Shown here: positions 25,590-36,908 of the stretch, one piece after another
How positions within the stretch are numbered: the stretch's first letter is position 1
Layout of the letters: every line of letters starts with the position of its first letter
Origin: Anaeramoeba ignava BMAN
Taxonomy: Eukaryota; Protista; Anaeramoebae
DNA length: 64,000 nt
NCBI GenBank assembly: GCA_028826165.1
Contig: JAPDFW010000006.1
Coordinates: 35,936 to 99,935 of the forward strand
Reading direction: 5' to 3'
Position numbers and translations under genes: made by a program
The notes under the pieces: generated by a model
Told to the model about the DNA's origin: nothing
Seen by the model: only the letters and a program-made list of their open reading frames with translations
Database searches by the model: none

Positions 25590-28164
25590 ATGTGTTTATT
25601 TGGTAATTGTTGCGGTAAAAATGCAAGGGAAAAGAAAAAGAAAAAGAAAAAAAGAAAGAAGCTCTTTATATAAAACAAATTAAGAGTTCTATTCAACCAA
25701 AAACATCTAAAAAATTTGAACAACTTTTCAAAAAATCCAAATATAAAAGAATAATAATAAAATATTTTCTATCTTTCTTAAGATTATCGATTATAAATAA
25801 TTCACCAGATTGTTTTCAAATTATATTTGAAAATGTTCAAAATCAAAATAAATTTCAACCTCAATCAAAATTTGATAATAAAAATATTCTTGCATTTATT
25901 TGTAAACAAAAAAGAGTTTCTGTTTGTGAAAAATTTTTGGAAATTACAAAAAATCAAAATATCACAGACTTAATTTTTCAAAAAGATCATCAAGGGAAAT
26001 CAGCTTTATTTTATGCAATGGAATCAACAGAAATGAAAAATATTGTTAGTTATTTATTAAAGAGATTAGGAATTATGATAAATTTTCAGGAAAATGAAAA
26101 TGAAGATGAAAATCAAATTGAAAATCAAATTCAAATTGAAAATCAAAATGAAAATCAAAATCAAATTCAAATTGAAAATCAAATTGATAATCAAAATCAA
26201 AATCAAATTCAAAATGAAAATCAAATTGAAAATCAAAATCAAAATAATCAAAATCAAATTCAAATTGAAAATCAAAATAATCAAAATCAAAATCAAAATA
26301 ATCAAAATGAAAATCAAAATAATCAAAATAATCAAAATAATCAAAATCTCAAAGATTACATTTATGAAATCATAAACACTTCCATTTCTGTTAATAATAC
26401 TTTCTACTTGAAACAATTTATCAAAGAAAAATATACTTTATTAGGTTTTAATCCAAATCATTATCCTCCTCTTTATTTTGCTGCTTATCATGATTTACTT
26501 AATGAATTTATACTTCTTCGAACAAATAATACACCAGAAATTCAAGTAGGAAATACTTTAATTCCTGTTTTCCACTTTATTTGCTCAGATGGAGAGATAT
26601 TAAATTCTTTAATGAAAAATAAGAATTCTACAAAAAATATTCCTTCCAAAAAATCTGATTTAAAAATTATTGAATATCTTTATAAAGAGAACAAAGAAGT
26701 GATTAATCAAAAATTTAATTCTCAATTACCTTTGCATTTAGCAACTCAATTTGGAAGAGGAGATGTTATTAAATGGTTAATTTCTCATGAAGCTAATATA
26801 AATGATATTGATGATTATCAAAAAAAACCAAAAGATTATATCCAAGAATTTTGGAAAAATTGTGAAGATATTTCAAATTTTTCAAAAGTAAAAGCCATTT
26901 TAAACGATGAACAAGATTATGAAGAAGATGTAAATGATTTTTTAAAAGAAAGGGAAAATAGGGAGAAAGAATTATCAGAAATCATAAATGAATTACTCCA
27001 AAAAGTAATTTTCTTTTTCAAAATTCACAATAATTTCTCAATAGAAAAGAAAAAAAATTATTTTGGAAATTTATCTAATATTTTTCATCTTATTTTTAAT
27101 ATCATTTAATAGGAGAATATCAACCAATCATTAAAAAATAATCCACAATTCCAAACATTCCAAAAAATTAGAACAGTAAATTTATAATCATTTATTTTTT
27201 TCTTTTGAAAGAAAAAAACTCATTCAATTTAAAACAAAACAATTAATTTTTTTTTTTCAAAAAGGAATTTCAAGAAAAAGAAACAAATCAAAAAAATAAA
27301 TTTAATCCATTTTTGGAAGAAATTTTTTCATTCAAATCATTATTTCAAGATAGTTTATATATTCAAGAAGGAATTTTTGAAACTCAAAACCAAAAACCTC
27401 TTTGGTTAATTTGTTCAAAACCAAGAGATGATTTCGAAAATTATTTAGAAACTCTTTCTCAAGTTAATGAAATAACTGGAATATCAGAATTTGTTGTCTT
27501 TTTGTTCATTTCTTCAAATAAGAATTTAAAATCAAATGAAAATTTAGAAAATAATTCAGAAAATAATTTAGAAAATAATTTAGAAAATAATTCAGAAAAT
27601 AATTCAGAAAATAATTCAGAAAATGATTTAAATATTTGTTTAGCTTTTCGGAAAAACAAAACACTTAAATCATCTAAAACGAAAATTTTTTCAAAAAATT
27701 TCAAACAAAAAGTTTGCGAAAAATTAATAGATATTGTTGGTGAATTACATTCCAAAAATATTGTTTATGGATTTTTGAATCCTCATTCAATTTATCTTGA
27801 TTTGAAAAATTTTGGAGTTCAATTACAACCATTAATTTTTCCAAAAAACTTTATTGTTCCTGAATTTATTCGACTTAATCAAGCAGATTATAAAGCTCCA
27901 GAACTCTTAGTCCCGTTTCCTCAGATAAAAGCTTCATCAGATGTTTATTCATTAGGAAAAATATTTTTGGAACTTTTCTCTAAAATTCCACTTCCTGAAA
28001 AAATTGATACTCCTTTTATTAGAGAAGAAGTTCCTAAAAAATTTGTTGATGTTGTTTCTCAATGTTTAAAAAAAAATCCAGAAAGAGATATTATAAAAAT
28101 TAAGGAATTATTAAAAAAGAAAAAGAAAAAGAAAAAGAAAAAGAGAAATGCTTTTTTCTTTTAA
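25590..28164 (+). CDS. Ankyrin-repeat plus pseudokinase protein (exons ~25590-27004, 27113-27175, 27265-28164; start needs a 1-nt correction in an A-rich run)
   Basis: KDHQGKSALFYA and QLPLHLATQFGRGDVIKWLISHEANIN (ankyrin); LHSKNIVYGFLNPHSIYL, YKAPE, SDVYSLG (kinase C-lobe without HRD or DFG). Confidence 0.75.
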
Positions 28165-28276: not shown

Positions 28277-31200
28277 TCAATTTACTTTTTTTGAAGAATT
28301 TAAAATACTTTCAAACCATAATTGTTTCAATTCATCAGATTCTGCATAAATGACATAAACACGATAATCCACAGAAATTTGGAAACCATGTTTTTTCTTT
28401 GGAATATTACAGTACTCAATTTTAGCTCCACGCAAAGGAATCATTCCACAAAGATGAGTTGAAGTTTTACCTTTAAAATAATACAAAGATTCACCAGCTA
28501 AAACAAACCAACGTTTCCTCCAATTGGAAGTTATGCCTTTTCCACCCTTTTTTGTTAAGTATCCTTCTCTGACAACATTTTCTGGACGAAACTTTGTGAT
28601 GTCCATATTCTGTGTTTTTCTACGACTTGCTTTTGGTGTGATGTTTTCATTTGTATTTTCTCGATTTTCTTGCATAAGTGAGTATTTATCAACAACACTT
28701 GCTAAGTGTGCCAAATTCTGATTTATGGGTGGATTTGATTCTGTGGAGAAAAACTTGAATGTGCGTTTGAATTTCTTGAAAACTGACCACATTGCACTTT
28801 GTCGGAAAGTTTTTTCGGAAAATTTTAAACGAACAACAATTCCCTTGTTTTGAGGCTGAACGATCAACTGTAATTCTTGTGAAGATCGTGTGTAGAAGTT
28901 GAGATGAGAAAGGAATACTGAGCCTGATGTGAACAAGTCGAATGCGTTTTGTGAGAATTTGTAACAATCATGACCGCAGTCTTTGATTCCCAAAAAATCA
29001 TCGAATGGAAATTCTTCGATAACAACAACACCTCCTGAATACAAATTGCGTTCATCACTGGAGATCCATTTGGAAGCTTTTGATTCTGTGATTCCAGGAT
29101 GAGCCAAAATATCTCTGATTGTTTTCTGTATTTGAGTGATGTGAGAGAGAATTGAATCGTTTTTATTAAAGGAAAATACAAAAGGACGAGTTTGATTCAT
29201 TGCTCCAATCATATATTCAGGATGCTTGTTTTGTGGTGAATCTCTTTCGTTAATCGAAATTCCAAAATGAACAGTGGAAGACCCAGATTGTTGCATCAGA
29301 GCAAAAGCCCAAGAAAATAATATTAAATTTTGTAATGGTATTTTTTGGTTTTGAATGAAATTTAATATGAAAATGTATTTTTCTCCTTTGATTTTTGTTG
29401 TGATTTCTGATGTTGCTGTTGATTGAACAAAGGAATCTCTTTTTTCTTGCACTTGATTCTTTTCTTGTGTTTTGAGATTTACCTTTTGAAGATGATATGT
29501 TTCTTTTGGATTGATTTGATTTAGAATTTTGTTTTTGTAGAATTTTTTGGATCGTGAAAAATCCCTTTTTCTTTCATTGGAAATGTATTCTTTAAGAAGA
29601 TCTCCAGAATAGATATTTTTTGGAAAGCTTTCTTGGATCATATTTTCTGAAATAACATTCTTTTTTGCTATCAGTTTTTGCTGTGATTTGTTTTTATTGG
29701 GAATTTCAACTTTTTTTTCGCAATAATTGATAAAAAGACGTAATAATAAAATAAAGACTGACCACAAATCCATAACGACTGGAGAATAAGTTATAACAAA
29801 GCAGTGCTCACAAGAGTTGTTGAAAGAGAGAAGAACGAGATTATACAATGGAGCATTTGATATTTTCCAATCATATGAACGTTGATTGTCAAGAATATTT
29901 CCAAGATCTTCTTTTTCAATGTTTATGATTTGCATCATGAATGGAACTTCTTTGAGAATCACTTGAAGAACATCGTTATCATGATTTAGGTTGGGAATAA
30001 AATATGAGCGAAAAGCTACTTCTTGGGTCTTAAAAATTTTTTCACAAATATCAGAGAAATGGAGATGATCAAAATTTCCTGATGAAAAATAAACACAAAC
30101 TTGATTACAAAGTGGATTATCCTTTTGATTTTTTTCTGCGAATATGCAATCTTCTAAGTTTTTTCTTAAGCATCGAAGAGGTGATAAAATGTTCTCAATT
30201 TCTCCGTTTTTATCCATAATACTAACTATTTTTTCCTTAGAAATATGCTTAGCAAGATGTGATTGTTCGAATATTTCATTATATTTTTCATATTTTGATT
30301 TTTTAGAAAATTCAGCAAAGTTTTGCCAAGAAGAATTCAAAGAAATGATAAAATCTTTCATTTTTTCCACGATGATTTGAATAGTTTCCAATTTTAATTT
30401 TGAAGATTCAAAATTAACTCTAATATGAAATTGGTTATTTTTAATAAAACAAATGATCAAAATAAGATTATCTTGAGAAGCAAAATTATCAATAACTTTT
30501 GAGACAAGCTGTTTTTCATCAAGAATAGAAATATCAAGTTCAATGTTTGCAAGTTTTTGATTTGAATAAGATTGTTGAGGAATAAAATGAAAAGCAATTT
30601 GTGAATTTTTAAGAATAGAAGAAACTTCTTTTAATGAAGAAAAGGAAGAATGAGATTCTTTTTCTTTTTCTTTTTGTTTCTTTTCTTTATAATATAAAAT
30701 TTTTTCTAAAAATGGGATATTTTGTCTCAGAAGAGAAATTTGTTCTTGGATTGAAGCGAGATAATAATGGAATTGATTTTGATTTTGATTTAAATTTTCT
30801 TTTAGATTTTCTTTTAAATTTTGATTTAAATTTTCTTTTAAATTTTCTTTTAAATTTTGATTTAAATTTTCTTTTAAATTTTCTTTTAAATTTTCTTTTA
30901 AATTTTCTTTTGAATTTTCTTTTAAATTTTCAACACTCAAAAAGGTAGGAATTTCAAACTCAGTTGGACCAATTAAAGAAATAGAAGGAGATTCAAAAAC
31001 ATGAAGAAAAATTGATTTTTGTTTTGTCCATGTAGATAAAGAGTAATAAACTGCAGTTAGTGCAATATCTTCAATTCTAACTAATTTTTGAGAAATTATT
31101 TGTTTTGATTGTTGAATTGATAGAAATGAAGAGAAAGTTTTTCTTAGTTTTAATTGTGATTCTTCAATTAAATCAACTGGAATTTCCTTGATTTGTAATT

Positions 31201-34200
31201 TAATATTTTCAGCTACTTTTTTCCAAAAATCAATTAATCTTTTGGGGATTCTTGTTTCCATTTGATCCAAAATCCATTCTTGAAATTTTATTGAATCATT
31301 TTGAATTTTTGAAAAAGAATGAGATAAAAGAAGACGGTTGTAATTTGACAATAAATTATCTACAAATGAAGTAATTGAATTAGTATCTGCTATGATTTTA
31401 TGGAATAGACATATGAGAGTATCTTGATTTATGATATTTATTGTGTCCGTTTTAATATTAGTTTTCGATTTTAAATCGACGTTTTTGTGATGAAAAAGAA
31501 AGCATTTGAAACAAAACCCTTCTTTGTTCTTTTCTACAAGACTCTGTATTACATCCGGAATCATAAATTTGGATATTTCAAGTTCTTCTGGTTCAATAAT
31601 CTGGAGTAAAGGCTTTGTTTTATCTTCTTCATCTTCAGGGAAATTGATCTCGTTCAAATGATTGTTGAGTAAAGTAACTGTTAATACCTTGTTTTCGAGA
31701 AGAACAAGATTAAGCGAATCTTTGAGAACAGAAATTTGTATTGGTTGAGCAAAGGGAATTACGACAAAACGCTGGAAAAATTGGTTTTGATTTTTGGAAT
31801 TTTGAATTTTTTCCAAAATACGTTTTTGAGCGCCTGATAACAATTTTAAAGAGGCTTTTTTGTGTTGTATCCCATCAATATAAACGCATAAATCTGTGAC
31901 AACCGGATTTGTAAATATATCCGATGAAGTAGAGTTGATATTGAAGTAATTATTTATTAAAGACGAAATCATAATAGCATCCAAATGATTTCCTCCAATT
32001 GCAAAAAAATTTGAGTTAATACCAACATCTTCACACATTAAAAACTGGTTATAAATTGAGCACACAATTTCTTCTGTCTTGTTTCTCGGATGGATCGCCT
32101 CTTTCTGTTTTTGGTGATTTTGCAGAGCTTTGTGTATTTGATTCCTCATTTCGCAATGTCTTTTCTCATTTTCAATTAATTTACCAATTATGAATGAATT
32201 GAAAAAATTAGAAGAAATTAAACGGAAATTTTGAGGAATAAAATCTAAAGGCAATCTTTTTTGCAAAAATGATCGCAAATCTGAATTAGAAGGAAAATCA
32301 TCGTTTTTCACAATAGCATAAACAACAATTTTGTGAATAGAAATAAAGCCTGAAATTGAGCGACGCAAAACAACTTTTGCTTGTGCTACTTGAGGGTGTT
32401 TTTCAAGTACAAAAGCTATTGATTTCAAATTGACTTTTTGGTCATTAATAATCACTTTGCATTCCTTGTTTTCTTCTTTTTGAAGATCTAAATGTACATT
32501 TCCAGATCGCAAAATACATCCATGAAAGCCTGTATTCGCCATTCTTTTTCTGCTTTGGTTTTGTTCTTGTTTGATAAATGGATTTATTGGAAAAAGTTTG
32601 TTGATTTCTTGTTTCAAATTTTGATTTTCGGGACTGTTTTCTGGATAATGGCCTTCAGAAACACAATTTCCATAAACAAAAATAGTTCCATAAACACCAA
32701 GAGGAACTGGTTTGAGATTCTTGTCTAAAACATACAATTGAGTACCTGAAATTGGGATCCCTACTGAATGATAATCGTCAAGTTTTTCCACTTTTTGGTA
32801 CAAATCAAATGTTTTATCCTGAGAAAATTCTTGTGTTTGTTTACTTTCATGCAGAGTTGATTTCTGTTTTGGTTGTTTCAAATTTTTTTGGTTGGCATTT
32901 TCTTGCGAATTCATGGGATAATTTTTCTTGTTATGAAGAACCAAATGAGTGATGAGTGAAGTATTTTCAACACCTCCAAAACAATAAACAAGTTTTTGAG
33001 GGAATAAATTGAATTTTTGGATCGATTCCAAAACTGAGAATGATAACGGTTCACCATATATAACAACCAAATCAAGAGTGGAAATTGTTGGAACATTTTT
33101 GGATTGCTTGTTGGTTTCGTTATTAGTTATCATAGCTGATAATTCTTGCGTTAAAATGTGCTGAAACAAAAGAGTCGGCAGGATTATTGTTTTGATGTGC
33201 CGACGTTTAACAAGTTTTGCGAAAGAGTGAGTGGTTGTTAATTGCTCCTCTTCTTTGACAACAACAAAACGACCTCCATTTAAAAGTGTTCCCCAAAACT
33301 CTATCAAAGATATCTCCTTAAAAATTGGAGAGTGCAAAACAACAACGCTGCATAAATCAATTTGATTTTCCCGTAAACTAAGCGCTCTTGAAATTATATT
33401 TGAATGAGTGATGCGAATTGGATGAATTTTCCCGCAATCAGCTATACTGTGGAATACACAAGCAACACTCGAACCTTTTGTATTTGTTTTTTTCTGTTTG
33501 TGTTTTGTCCAGTTCTTTGCAACCCAGTTGTTTGTTTTTTCTGTGAAATCTGATTCAATTACTTCAACTAAAAAATCCATTTTTGGATCCTTTTTTTTAA
33601 TTTTATGGAAAATTTCTTCATTTTCTGGATCTGTTAAAACATATTTGATTTTCCTTTTCTTCAGAATATTGCCCAATAATTTACGAGGAAGCATTTCATC
33701 CAAAGGAACATATATGCAATCAGCCTTCAATATTGCTAGCAATAAGACTGGAGTTAAAAACGAGTTTTGGATTAAAATTGCAATGTGAGATTTTGGTTGA
33801 ATTCCGATTTTATCTTGGATATAAATTGAAAATGCTCTTGATTGGTTTTGGAGTTCTTGATAAGTGATTGTTTTTTCTTGCGATTTAATAGCTATTGCAT
33901 TTCCTCTTTGCTTTGCGATTCCTCTAAACAGAGAAGGAATTGAAATGGAAACGAGATTGTGGAATTTTTCAATTTTTTGATTTTGTTGATTCCATTGAAT
34001 GATAATTTGATTTTTTTCGTGTTGATTGATTTTAGGAATTGAGGTTAATGGATTTTTTATCAATGATTTATTTGAGAGATGTCCAACAATATCATTAAAA
34101 TGGGACGAAAGATTCATAATGAAATTAGGATGGAATTTGTTTGGGTTGAAGAGGATTTTGTGGAATAAGCTTGAATGGATGGTATTTTTTGGAATTTGAT

Positions 34201-35018
34201 TTCCATCCTTTAAATCTTGAACAGAAAATCCAAAAACAATATCAAATAAATCACAAATCAGAACCTTATCCCTAGATTTTGTTTTAAATAATAAAGGGAA
34301 ATCACTTATACAATTGATAATTTCTGAGCTACCAAATAAAATCAATGTTTTGATTCCTTTTTGAATTTGGTTTTGAATTTGATTTTGATTTTTATTAATT
34401 TTTGATTTTTTAAAATATTCTTGCAATTGAACCGATTGCCAAATATCATTTCCACCAATTTTTTCAACTTGCTTTGTTTGATTTTGAACACTTTGAATCA
34501 AATTTGAAAAATTATAATTGGATTTTTCAGTTGGAATTGTTGCAAAAAAGGGAAAAACTAAAATATAAACTTGATTTTCTTTTTTATCAAAAATAGCTTC
34601 TAATTGATGAGAAAAGGGTAATGTTATTGCATTTTTTGGGGAAGAAAAATGTCTAAAAAGTAAATGAACCAATGATAAAATGATATCATATGATTGAAAC
34701 TGTGGGAATTCTTCAAATAATTCATTAAGTTTATGTGAAAAGAAAGGAAAACTTCTAAATTGTTTATTGTTTTCAATTTTTTCATTCAATTCATTTTCAT
34801 TTTCATTTCCATTATAAATAATTTCACTTCCTTTAAATATTATTTCTTGAGTATTTGAAGTTTCATTTTTAAAGAATTCATCTGATTTTGATAAACTTTT
34901 TGTTGTTATTTTTTTTTAAATTTAATTTTTAAAAAAAAAATTTTTTTGAATTAAAATCAAAATTAAAATCAAATTAGAAATCAAAATTAAAAATAAAAAT
35001 AACAAACTTTTGGTTCAT
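28277..35018 (-). CDS. NRPS-derived C-A-T-E-C(DCL) protein with degenerate active sites, fused to a C-terminal PH domain
   Basis: Single 2170-aa ORF, open upstream to ~34910, with a probable mini-exon MNQK at 35018. A-domain TITYQEL..LLAILKADCIYVPLD, VGIPISGTQLYVLDKNLKPVPLGVYG; T-domain PRNKTEE..FFAIGGNHL; FHKIIAD; YSPVVMDLWS; PH domain VVREGYLTKKGG...NWRKRWFVL...YAESDELKQLW. Confidence 0.9.
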
Positions 35019-35061
35019 TTTTTATAAATTTTTAAGAAAAAAGAAAAAATGAAAAAAAATG

Positions 35062-36908
35062 GAAAAATGAAAATTAATTTAATTTAATATTTAATTTAAT
35101 TTAAATTTTAAAATTAAAAAATAAAACATTTTATAAATTAAATTTAATTTAAATTAATTTTAGAAAATAATATAAATTTATTAAAATTATTGAATAATTT
35201 TGATTATAAAAATATTTAAATATAAAAAAGTAAAATATTATTTTAAACATTAAATTAAATTTAAAATTATATTTTTAAATAATTTTTAAAATTAATTTAT
35301 TTATTAATTTTTATTCCATTTTCTTTATTTTTAATTAATTTTAATTTTAATTTTGAATAATTTTTAATAATTTTAAATAGAAAAATGAAAATTAATTTAA
35401 TTTAATATTTAATTTAATTTCAATTTTAAAATTAAAATATAAAACATTTTATAAATTAAATTTAATTTAATTCTATTTTAGAAAATAATATAAATTTATT
35501 AAAATTATTGAATAATTTTAATTATAAAAATATTTAAATTTAAAAAGTAAAATATTATTTTAAACATTAAATTAAATTTAAAATTATATTTTTAAATAAT
35601 TTTTAAAATTAATTTATTTATTAATTTTTATTCCATTTTCTTTATTTTTAAATAATTTTAATTTTAATTTTGAATAATTTTTAATAATTTTAAATAGAAA
35701 AATGAAAATTAATTTAATTTAATACTTAATTTAATTTAAATTTTAAAATTAAAATATAAAACATTTTATAAATTAAATTTAATTTAAATTAATTTTAGAA
35801 AATAATATAAATTTATTAAAATTATTGAATAATTTTGATTATAAAAATATTTAAATATAAAAAGTAAAATATTATTTTAAACATTAAATTAAATTTAAAA
35901 TTATATTTTTAAATAATTTTTAAAATTAATTTATTTATTAATTTTTATTCCATTTTCTTTATTTTTAATTAATTTTAATTTTAATTTTGAATAATTTTTA
36001 ATAATTTTAAATAGAAAAATGAAAATTAATTTAATTTAATATTTAATTTAATTTCAATTTTAAAATTAAAATATAAAACATTTTATAAATTAAATTTAAA
36101 TTTAAATTAATTTTAGAAAATAATATAAATTTATTAAAATTATTGAATAATTTTGATTATAAAAATATTTAAATTTAAAAAGTAAAATATTATTTTTAAA
36201 CATTAAATTAAATTTAAAATTATATTTTTAAATAATTTTTAAAATTAATTTATTTATTAATTTTCATTCCATTTTCTTTATTTTTAAATTAATTTTAATT
36301 TTAATTTTGAATAATTTTTAATAATTTTAAATAGAAAAATGAAAATTAATTTAATTTAATATTTAATTTAATTTCAATTTTAAAATTAAAATATAAAACA
36401 TTTTATAAATTAAATTTAATTTAATTCTATTTTAGAAAATAATATAAATTTATTAAAATTATTGAATAATTTTGATTATAAAAATATTTAAATTTAAAAA
36501 AGTAAAATATTATTTTAAACATTAAATTAAATTTAAAATTATATTTTTAAATAATTTTTAAAATTAATTTATTTATTAATTTTTATTCCATTTTCTTTAT
36601 TTTTAATTAATTTTAATTTTAATTTTGAATAATTTTTAATAATTTTAAATAGAAAAATGAAAATTAATTTAATTTAATATTTAATTTAATTTCAATTTTA
36701 AAATTAAAAATAAAACATTTTATAAATTAAATTTAAATTTAAATTAATTTTAGAAAATAATATAAATTTATTAAAATTATTGAATAATTTTGATTATAAA
36801 AATATTTAAATTTAAAAAAGTAAAATATTATTTTAAACATTAAATTAAATTTAAAATTATATTTTTAAATAATTTTTAAAATTAATTTATTTATTAATTT
36901 TTATTCCA
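35062..36908. repeat. Complex tandem array, ~318-bp unit, ~5.8 near-identical copies, almost pure A/T
   Basis: Unit start GAAAAATGAAAATTAATT recurs at 35062, 35380, 35697, 36014, 36334 and 36652. Confidence 0.92.

Follow-up and report, generated by a model that had tools for sequence, protein, structure and literature searches.

The gene at 28277-35018 on the reverse strand of the window, the 64,000-nucleotide stretch of Anaeramoeba ignava BMAN DNA analysed here (contig JAPDFW010000006.1, positions 35,936 to 99,935), was found to join an NRPS module to a eukaryotic PH domain in the order half-C, A, T, E, DCL-type C, PH. Judged by their sequences, this protein and its paralogues are apparently NRPS pseudoenzymes that have retained their folds, and the family is apparently undescribed. 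The domains are all known; their combination, the loss of catalysis and the expansion of the family are the new part. As catalytic motifs have been lost and a PH domain has been fused on, the proteins resemble repurposed membrane scaffolds more than enzymes that make peptides, although they were catalogued as the latter.

On the contig the gene occupies positions 64,212-70,953. The published antiSMASH region 105.1 (44,212-90,953) corresponded exactly to this gene plus and minus 20 kb; the published gene model therefore starts and stops at these positions, which are also the limits given in an earlier note on this DNA. ORF analysis of the window showed that one frame of the minus strand runs for 2212 codons without a stop, between 34915 and 28280. 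The single uninterrupted ORF of >2170 amino acids that the earlier note described was therefore largely borne out, but the ATG, at 35018, lies in a separate probable first exon of 11 nt (35008-35018, minus strand), which encodes M-N-Q and a split codon and whose outer end is that of region 105.1 minus 20 kb. This exon is followed by a probable spliceosomal GT-AG intron (34896-35007, minus strand), predicted from the sequence only, of 112 nt and in phase 2, which would put exon 1 in frame with the long coding exon (28277-34895, minus strand) to give a protein of about 2209 amino acids including exon 1. The gene is thus not strictly one uninterrupted ORF. The transcript of the C68 paralogue also has a short first exon.

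Pfam analysis of the window protein, numbered from the TTG at 34789, revealed AMP-binding (amino acids 292-715, E 1e-42), PP-binding (amino acids 911-970, over the cut-off) and PH (PF00169, amino acids 2072-2164, E 1e-18) domains, and a six-frame search placed Condensation (PF00668) over the cut-off in the last C domain, so that every profile expected of an NRPS-PH fusion was matched. The AlphaFold2 model of the N-terminal half (mean pLDDT 78) matched C-A-T modules in Foldseek, e.g. EntF (E 4e-49), and that of the C-terminal half (mean pLDDT 71) matched E-C didomains, e.g. PvdL E2-C3 (E 2e-37), which agreed with the domains assigned in the earlier note; as the AlphaFold2 alignments included bacterial NRPSs, the models indicate fold compatibility and are not fully independent.

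Alignment showed the family to be collinear with a bacterial C-A-T-E-C module. All of the following features are on the minus strand. The N-terminus starts at the C-terminal lobe of a condensation domain (34016-34753), assigned by alignment and folded in the model, with HMM scores that alone were very weak; the catalytic N-lobe with HHxxxDG is therefore missing. In NRPS structures the C-lobe of the C domain packs on the A domain, and that lobe is the one kept here. A pseudo-adenylation domain, comprising core and sub-domain (32201-33943; Pfam, alignment), is followed by a carrier (T/PCP) domain of the kind found ahead of E domains (31880-32059; Pfam, alignment), a pseudo-epimerization domain (30356-31828; alignment, HMM class of the paralogues, Foldseek) and a pseudo-condensation domain of DCL type (28736-30223; six-frame Pfam, alignment, HMM class). 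The epimerization domain contains an in-frame 12-bp tandem repeat (30782-30932) of about 12.6 copies, of the ENLK/QNLN type. The PH domain (28298-28576; Pfam, alignment, PDB matches) occupies the place of the next A domain.

The types of the C domains were assigned with HMMs labelled by domain context. The middle domain was classed as E in the five paralogues (88-145 bits versus at most 75), whereas that of the window gene alone scored 21 versus 23 bits and is too diverged to class. The last C domain was DCL in all six members, with 83 bits against 31 for LCL and 2 for E in the window gene. The order (degenerate C)-A-T-E/C-C-PH proposed in the earlier note thus stands by Pfam, AlphaFold2 and Foldseek, with the refinement that the first C is a C-lobe only, the middle domain is E and the last is of DCL type. 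NRPS lines end in TE, R, C or docking domains, and the PH domain is a eukaryotic membrane and phosphoinositide targeting module; Pfam and the model placed a PH domain at the C-terminus of the window protein and found no TE, R, CT or docking domain there.

Alignments revealed the A3 P-loop, the A8 Arg, EGHGRE and the catalytic His of the DCL domain to be absent from all six members. The ATP motifs of the A domain (A3 TSGxTGxPKG, A7 TGD and A8 GRxD) were found in none of them; the P-loop site of the window gene reads HSIADCGKIHP (33419-33454), and the A7 Asp, lost throughout, is replaced by Glu in C114 and C101. The equivalent of Asp235, the amino-group anchor, aligned with Glu in five of the six members, including the window gene. 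The A5 Glu and the A10 Lys were partly kept across the family, the latter in three or four members. The carrier Ser was replaced by His in the window gene (GGNH, 31985-31987) and by Glu in C115 (GGNE) and was kept in C68, C59, C101 and C114. In the E domain, HHxxxD was kept only in C114, the window gene having HKIIAD at this point (31385-31402), and where HHxxxDG is expected in the DCL domain the window gene encodes SPVVMDL (29765-29785) and the paralogues an ESF/EPF-type motif. The intact NRPS of the same genome (C47/C99), which served as an internal control, kept every motif. An active NRPS was rejected on the lost A-domain, E-domain and DCL motifs, and the degenerate module or "pseudo-NRPS" of the earlier note is an apt description of all six members.

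The genome (42,843,398 bases, 147 contigs) was searched for the same architecture. This revealed five paralogues with the C-PH ending, on contigs C68, C115, C114, C101 and C59; a GT-AG intron is present in the A domain of C114 and C101. Apparent frameshifts interrupt the A domain of the C59 paralogue (L016:3402-3648), which the published antiSMASH list does not include. The EukProt transcriptome protein for C68 is a complete ORF of 2334 amino acids that is 100% identical to the genome and carries the fusion, and EukProt proteins with the fusion also matched C115 and C114/C101, so that at least three loci are represented in total; at NCBI these proteins are named hypothetical protein or NRPS. 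The family is transcribed, by the records of its paralogues; database protein searches returned no transcript record for the window gene's own protein. A eukaryotic PH domain fused to an NRPS module, as the earlier note had read this gene, is thereby a stronger case, resting on a six-member family with transcript records.

The five PH domains in the genome nearest to that of the window gene were those of the five paralogues (E 1e-29 to 1e-21; the next was 1e-11), and the five A domains tested formed one clade with a support of 100 in three trees, which points to a single fusion followed by duplication. The dN/dS of C114 versus C101, calculated to check for selection as the earlier note had suggested, was 0.14 (0.07-0.27 per domain, with 0.075 for the T domain), which indicates purifying selection for this one paralogue pair, dS being near saturation in some domains. 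Within the window gene four of six variants were synonymous, a very small sample. The PH (48%) and T (44%) domains were the best conserved of the family, the others ranging from 23 to 33%.

The best matches of the family were bacterial NRPSs at 20-25% identity. A bacterial-type origin of the NRPS part is supported by alignment and fold, in line with the biosynthetic megaenzyme that the earlier note held to have been captured. The family shares with bacterial C-A-T-E-DCL modules (PvdL, tyrocidine and microcystin synthetases) its domain order, folds, GGDS-type T-before-E signature and E-DCL pairing. Unlike these modules it lacks the N-lobe of the first C, the P-loop, the A7 Asp, the A8 Arg, EGHGRE and the DCL His, it has a PH domain in place of a next module or release domain, and its members are nuclear genes with spliceosomal introns. 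The intact NRPS of A. ignava is likewise bacterial-type, with an intron and in the same genome, but all of its motifs are intact, its C domains are of LCL type, it has no E domain and it ends in a reductase. In one tree the pseudo A domains grouped with this enzyme at 99; the grouping was lost with composition-matched, AT-biased references or SR4 recoding and showed no robust sister relation. Given this, and the LCL type and missing E domain of the intact enzyme, the pseudo A domains may or may not descend from the intact NRPS, and the comparisons point to no particular donor.

Dead enzyme folds combined with a PH domain serve as scaffolds in PRIP/PLCL and MTMR5/13, where the dead folds are native lipid-signalling enzymes and not a captured assembly line. 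The X-domain of glycopeptide NRPSs (Tcp12, PDB 4TX2/4TX3), which was among the Foldseek matches, is like the family a dead C-fold, and it recruits partner proteins (PMC10510592). The X-domain is, however, one dead domain in an active bacterial line, whereas the family represents a whole dead module that is predicted to be membrane-targeted; its dead C domains were classed as E and DCL and lie in a dead module that lacks a TE, unlike the P450-recruiting terminal module of a glycopeptide NRPS. DIP2, an opisthokont FAAL-like protein, shares the bacterial PKS/NRPS-associated adenylation fold and acts in lipid regulation (PMC9342972). It combines FAAL-like domains in tandem with a DMAP1-binding domain and lacks T, E, C and PH, whereas the family has a single NRPS-type A domain followed by T-E-C-PH.

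The PH domain was closest to those of myosin X, cytohesin/GRP1 and PLEKHA, with PDB matches to myosin X, GRP1 and ARNO, and its AlphaFold2 model contained the strands and the C-terminal helix. In the beta1-beta2 region of the window PH a KXn(K/R)XR motif was found (K2080...R2091-K-R2093), which was also present in C68, C59 and C101; its first Lys was lost in C114 and C115. This motif marks the canonical phosphoinositide site of PH domains (PMC4975593), but it is common and does not by itself prove specificity. Together with the likeness of the PH domain and a PI3K Ras-binding domain present in the genome, it suggests recruitment to phosphoinositide membranes.

The reading that we favour, and consider somewhat probable on the sequence evidence, is that the family consists of domesticated NRPS pseudoenzymes acting as membrane-recruited scaffolds. 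The C-lobe, A, T, E and DCL domains of a bacterial-type NRPS, on this reading acquired by transfer, were evidently fused once to a eukaryotic PH domain that replaced the next A domain. The fused gene was duplicated and is now present in six copies, in which the adenylation, epimerase and condensation motifs are lost and the folds kept. The PH domain may dock the 250-kDa protein on phosphoinositide-rich membranes of the phagosome, the endosome or possibly the symbiosome, where the dead A, E and C folds would act as protein-binding surfaces, as does the inactive X-domain in glycopeptide NRPSs. Against this, the carrier Ser retained by four of the six members is not needed by a pure scaffold, some C domains are active without the second His (PMC10510592), and the loss of the first Lys in C114 and C115 counts against docking through the KXn(K/R)XR motif.

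The residues retained in the A domain could instead be those of a ligand sensor, in which an amino acid, an amine, a bacterial peptide or a peptidoglycan fragment would still be bound in the pocket of the dead A domain or in the tunnels of C and E, and a conformational change would be read at the phosphoinositide membrane. This would agree with the Glu at the amino-group anchor in five of the six members, with the A10 Lys in C114, C101, C59 and probably the window gene, and with the loss of the phosphate-binding residues but not, for the most part, of GE(P) and the A5 Glu. E-DCL units also handle D-residues, and the host lives with bacterial symbionts (PMC11550330). The pocket residues were, however, assigned from alignments of ~25% identity, C115 lacks both anchors and there is no output domain besides the PH, so a sensor is a possible but unlikely reading.

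The conservation of the T domain, with its low dN/dS and its Ser in four members, would be expected of a carrier or accessory module working in trans, phosphopantetheinylated and then loaded by the intact NRPS or a CAR-like enzyme for biosynthesis or for display of a product at the membrane. The genome encodes an Sfp/AASDHPPT-type transferase, an intact C-A-T-C-A-T-R NRPS and a ZZ-A-T-R enzyme, and the E domain of C114 keeps HHxxxD. Yet the window gene and C115 cannot bear the arm although their frames are open, the partner genes are on other contigs, and carriers and a terminal reductase are already part of the intact NRPS; we rate a role in trans as still less likely than a sensor.

A role as host receptors or scaffolds at the symbiosome or phagosome membrane, to which phosphoinositides would recruit them and in which the dead A, E and DCL pockets would bind bacterial peptides containing D-amino acids and so tell symbionts from prey, is distinctly doubtful. 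The family supplies six candidates for components of these membranes.

That the sites were remodelled for a new chemistry, such as a DIP2-like lipid acyl transfer at membranes, appears very unlikely. Every member of the family keeps the structural Asp of the C/E motifs and the Ser after it, and DIP2 shows that bacterial adenylation folds can be reused in eukaryotic lipid regulation (PMC9342972), but no invariant nucleophile or general base has taken the place of the lost His, and the P-loop remnants differ among all members, unlike a conserved new active site.

The C-PH fusion is real. A short-read Logan contig (28344-29975) crossed the C-PH junction, on which the earlier note had wanted reads, with 0 differences; it derives from run X1, whose type is not recorded and which may come from the same culture, and so is not proof of transcription. 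The genes neighbouring the window gene are eukaryotic (Ctf4, SAC9-like and beta-adaptin). Chimeric assembly or bacterial contamination was rejected on the evidence of these neighbours, the introns, the six loci and the junction-spanning contig. An assembly chimera or decaying pseudogenes, as the apparent frameshifts of the C59 copy and the position of the window gene as the most diverged member might suggest, is extremely improbable and largely refuted by the six independent contigs, the full fusions in transcript-derived proteins, the introns of the paralogues, the low dN/dS, the Logan contig and a frame that stays open over 6.6 kb at a GC content of about 28%.

A C-PH profile was compared with 1.84 billion representatives, a library without C59 and the window gene and possibly without A. 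flamelloides; among the matches listed to 284 bits only three were full-length, all from A. ignava. Leave-one-out scores of 379-625 bits lay above this 284-bit floor, which suggests that kin at family distance would have been listed. Homologue searches, with single exons or existing database proteins as queries, gave 117 and 52 matches, all plain NRPSs bar the A. ignava paralogues, although these searches were word-based and missed known paralogues, so that their blanks mean little. The ESM Atlas returned only bacterial condensation clusters. Literature searches found no relevant NRPS-PH fusion, as the earlier note had also held, and no description of a whole-module NRPS pseudoenzyme family was found.

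It has been suggested that Anaeramoeba NRPS products may select symbionts (PMC11550330); that paper treats these regions only as NRPSs, and its main text does not refer to PH domains. Five of the seven 'NRPS' regions published for A. ignava from antiSMASH (Supplementary Data 7, PMC11550330) were, by their coordinates, pseudo-NRPS-PH genes: 7.1 is C115, 27.1 is C68, 57.1 is C101, 69.1 is C114 and 105.1 is the window gene. Regions 55.1 and 140.1 were the two 98% identical copies of the intact NRPS. The published inference on symbiont selection is thus qualified, as five of the seven regions are motif-dead fusions, and antiSMASH counts in protists can include pseudoenzymes. If correct, the scaffold reading would mean that a megaenzyme of secondary metabolism was acquired by gene transfer and then recruited into the membrane biology of a eukaryote.

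The intact C-A-T-C-A-T-R NRPS, the only motif-complete multimodular NRPS found in the genome, is encoded on C99 (2.3-10.4 kb; L013, L024) and C47 (L012, L023) and has a spliceosomal intron in its second A domain. A carboxylic-acid-reductase-like A-T-R enzyme on contig C97 (L025:3037-6663, minus strand) has kept its P-loop and carries a ZZ zinc finger at the N-terminus, and is thus a second case of a eukaryotic domain fused to an NRPS-like enzyme. The single Sfp/AASDHPPT-type phosphopantetheinyl transferase found lies on contig C113 (L011:1186-1983, plus strand). Within the window, a 317-bp tandem repeat (35057-36908; 5.8 copies, 97% identity, ~5% GC) begins 39 bases upstream of the ATG of the pseudo-NRPS-PH gene. 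An ORF with ankyrin repeats and, after it, a degenerate kinase-like ORF (25937-28164, plus strand) are convergent with this gene and end ~110 bases from its stop. The protein encoded between 9250 and 11313 (plus strand) matched the STRA6-like retinol-binding-protein receptor (PF14752, E 2e-11), here in an anaerobic metamonad.
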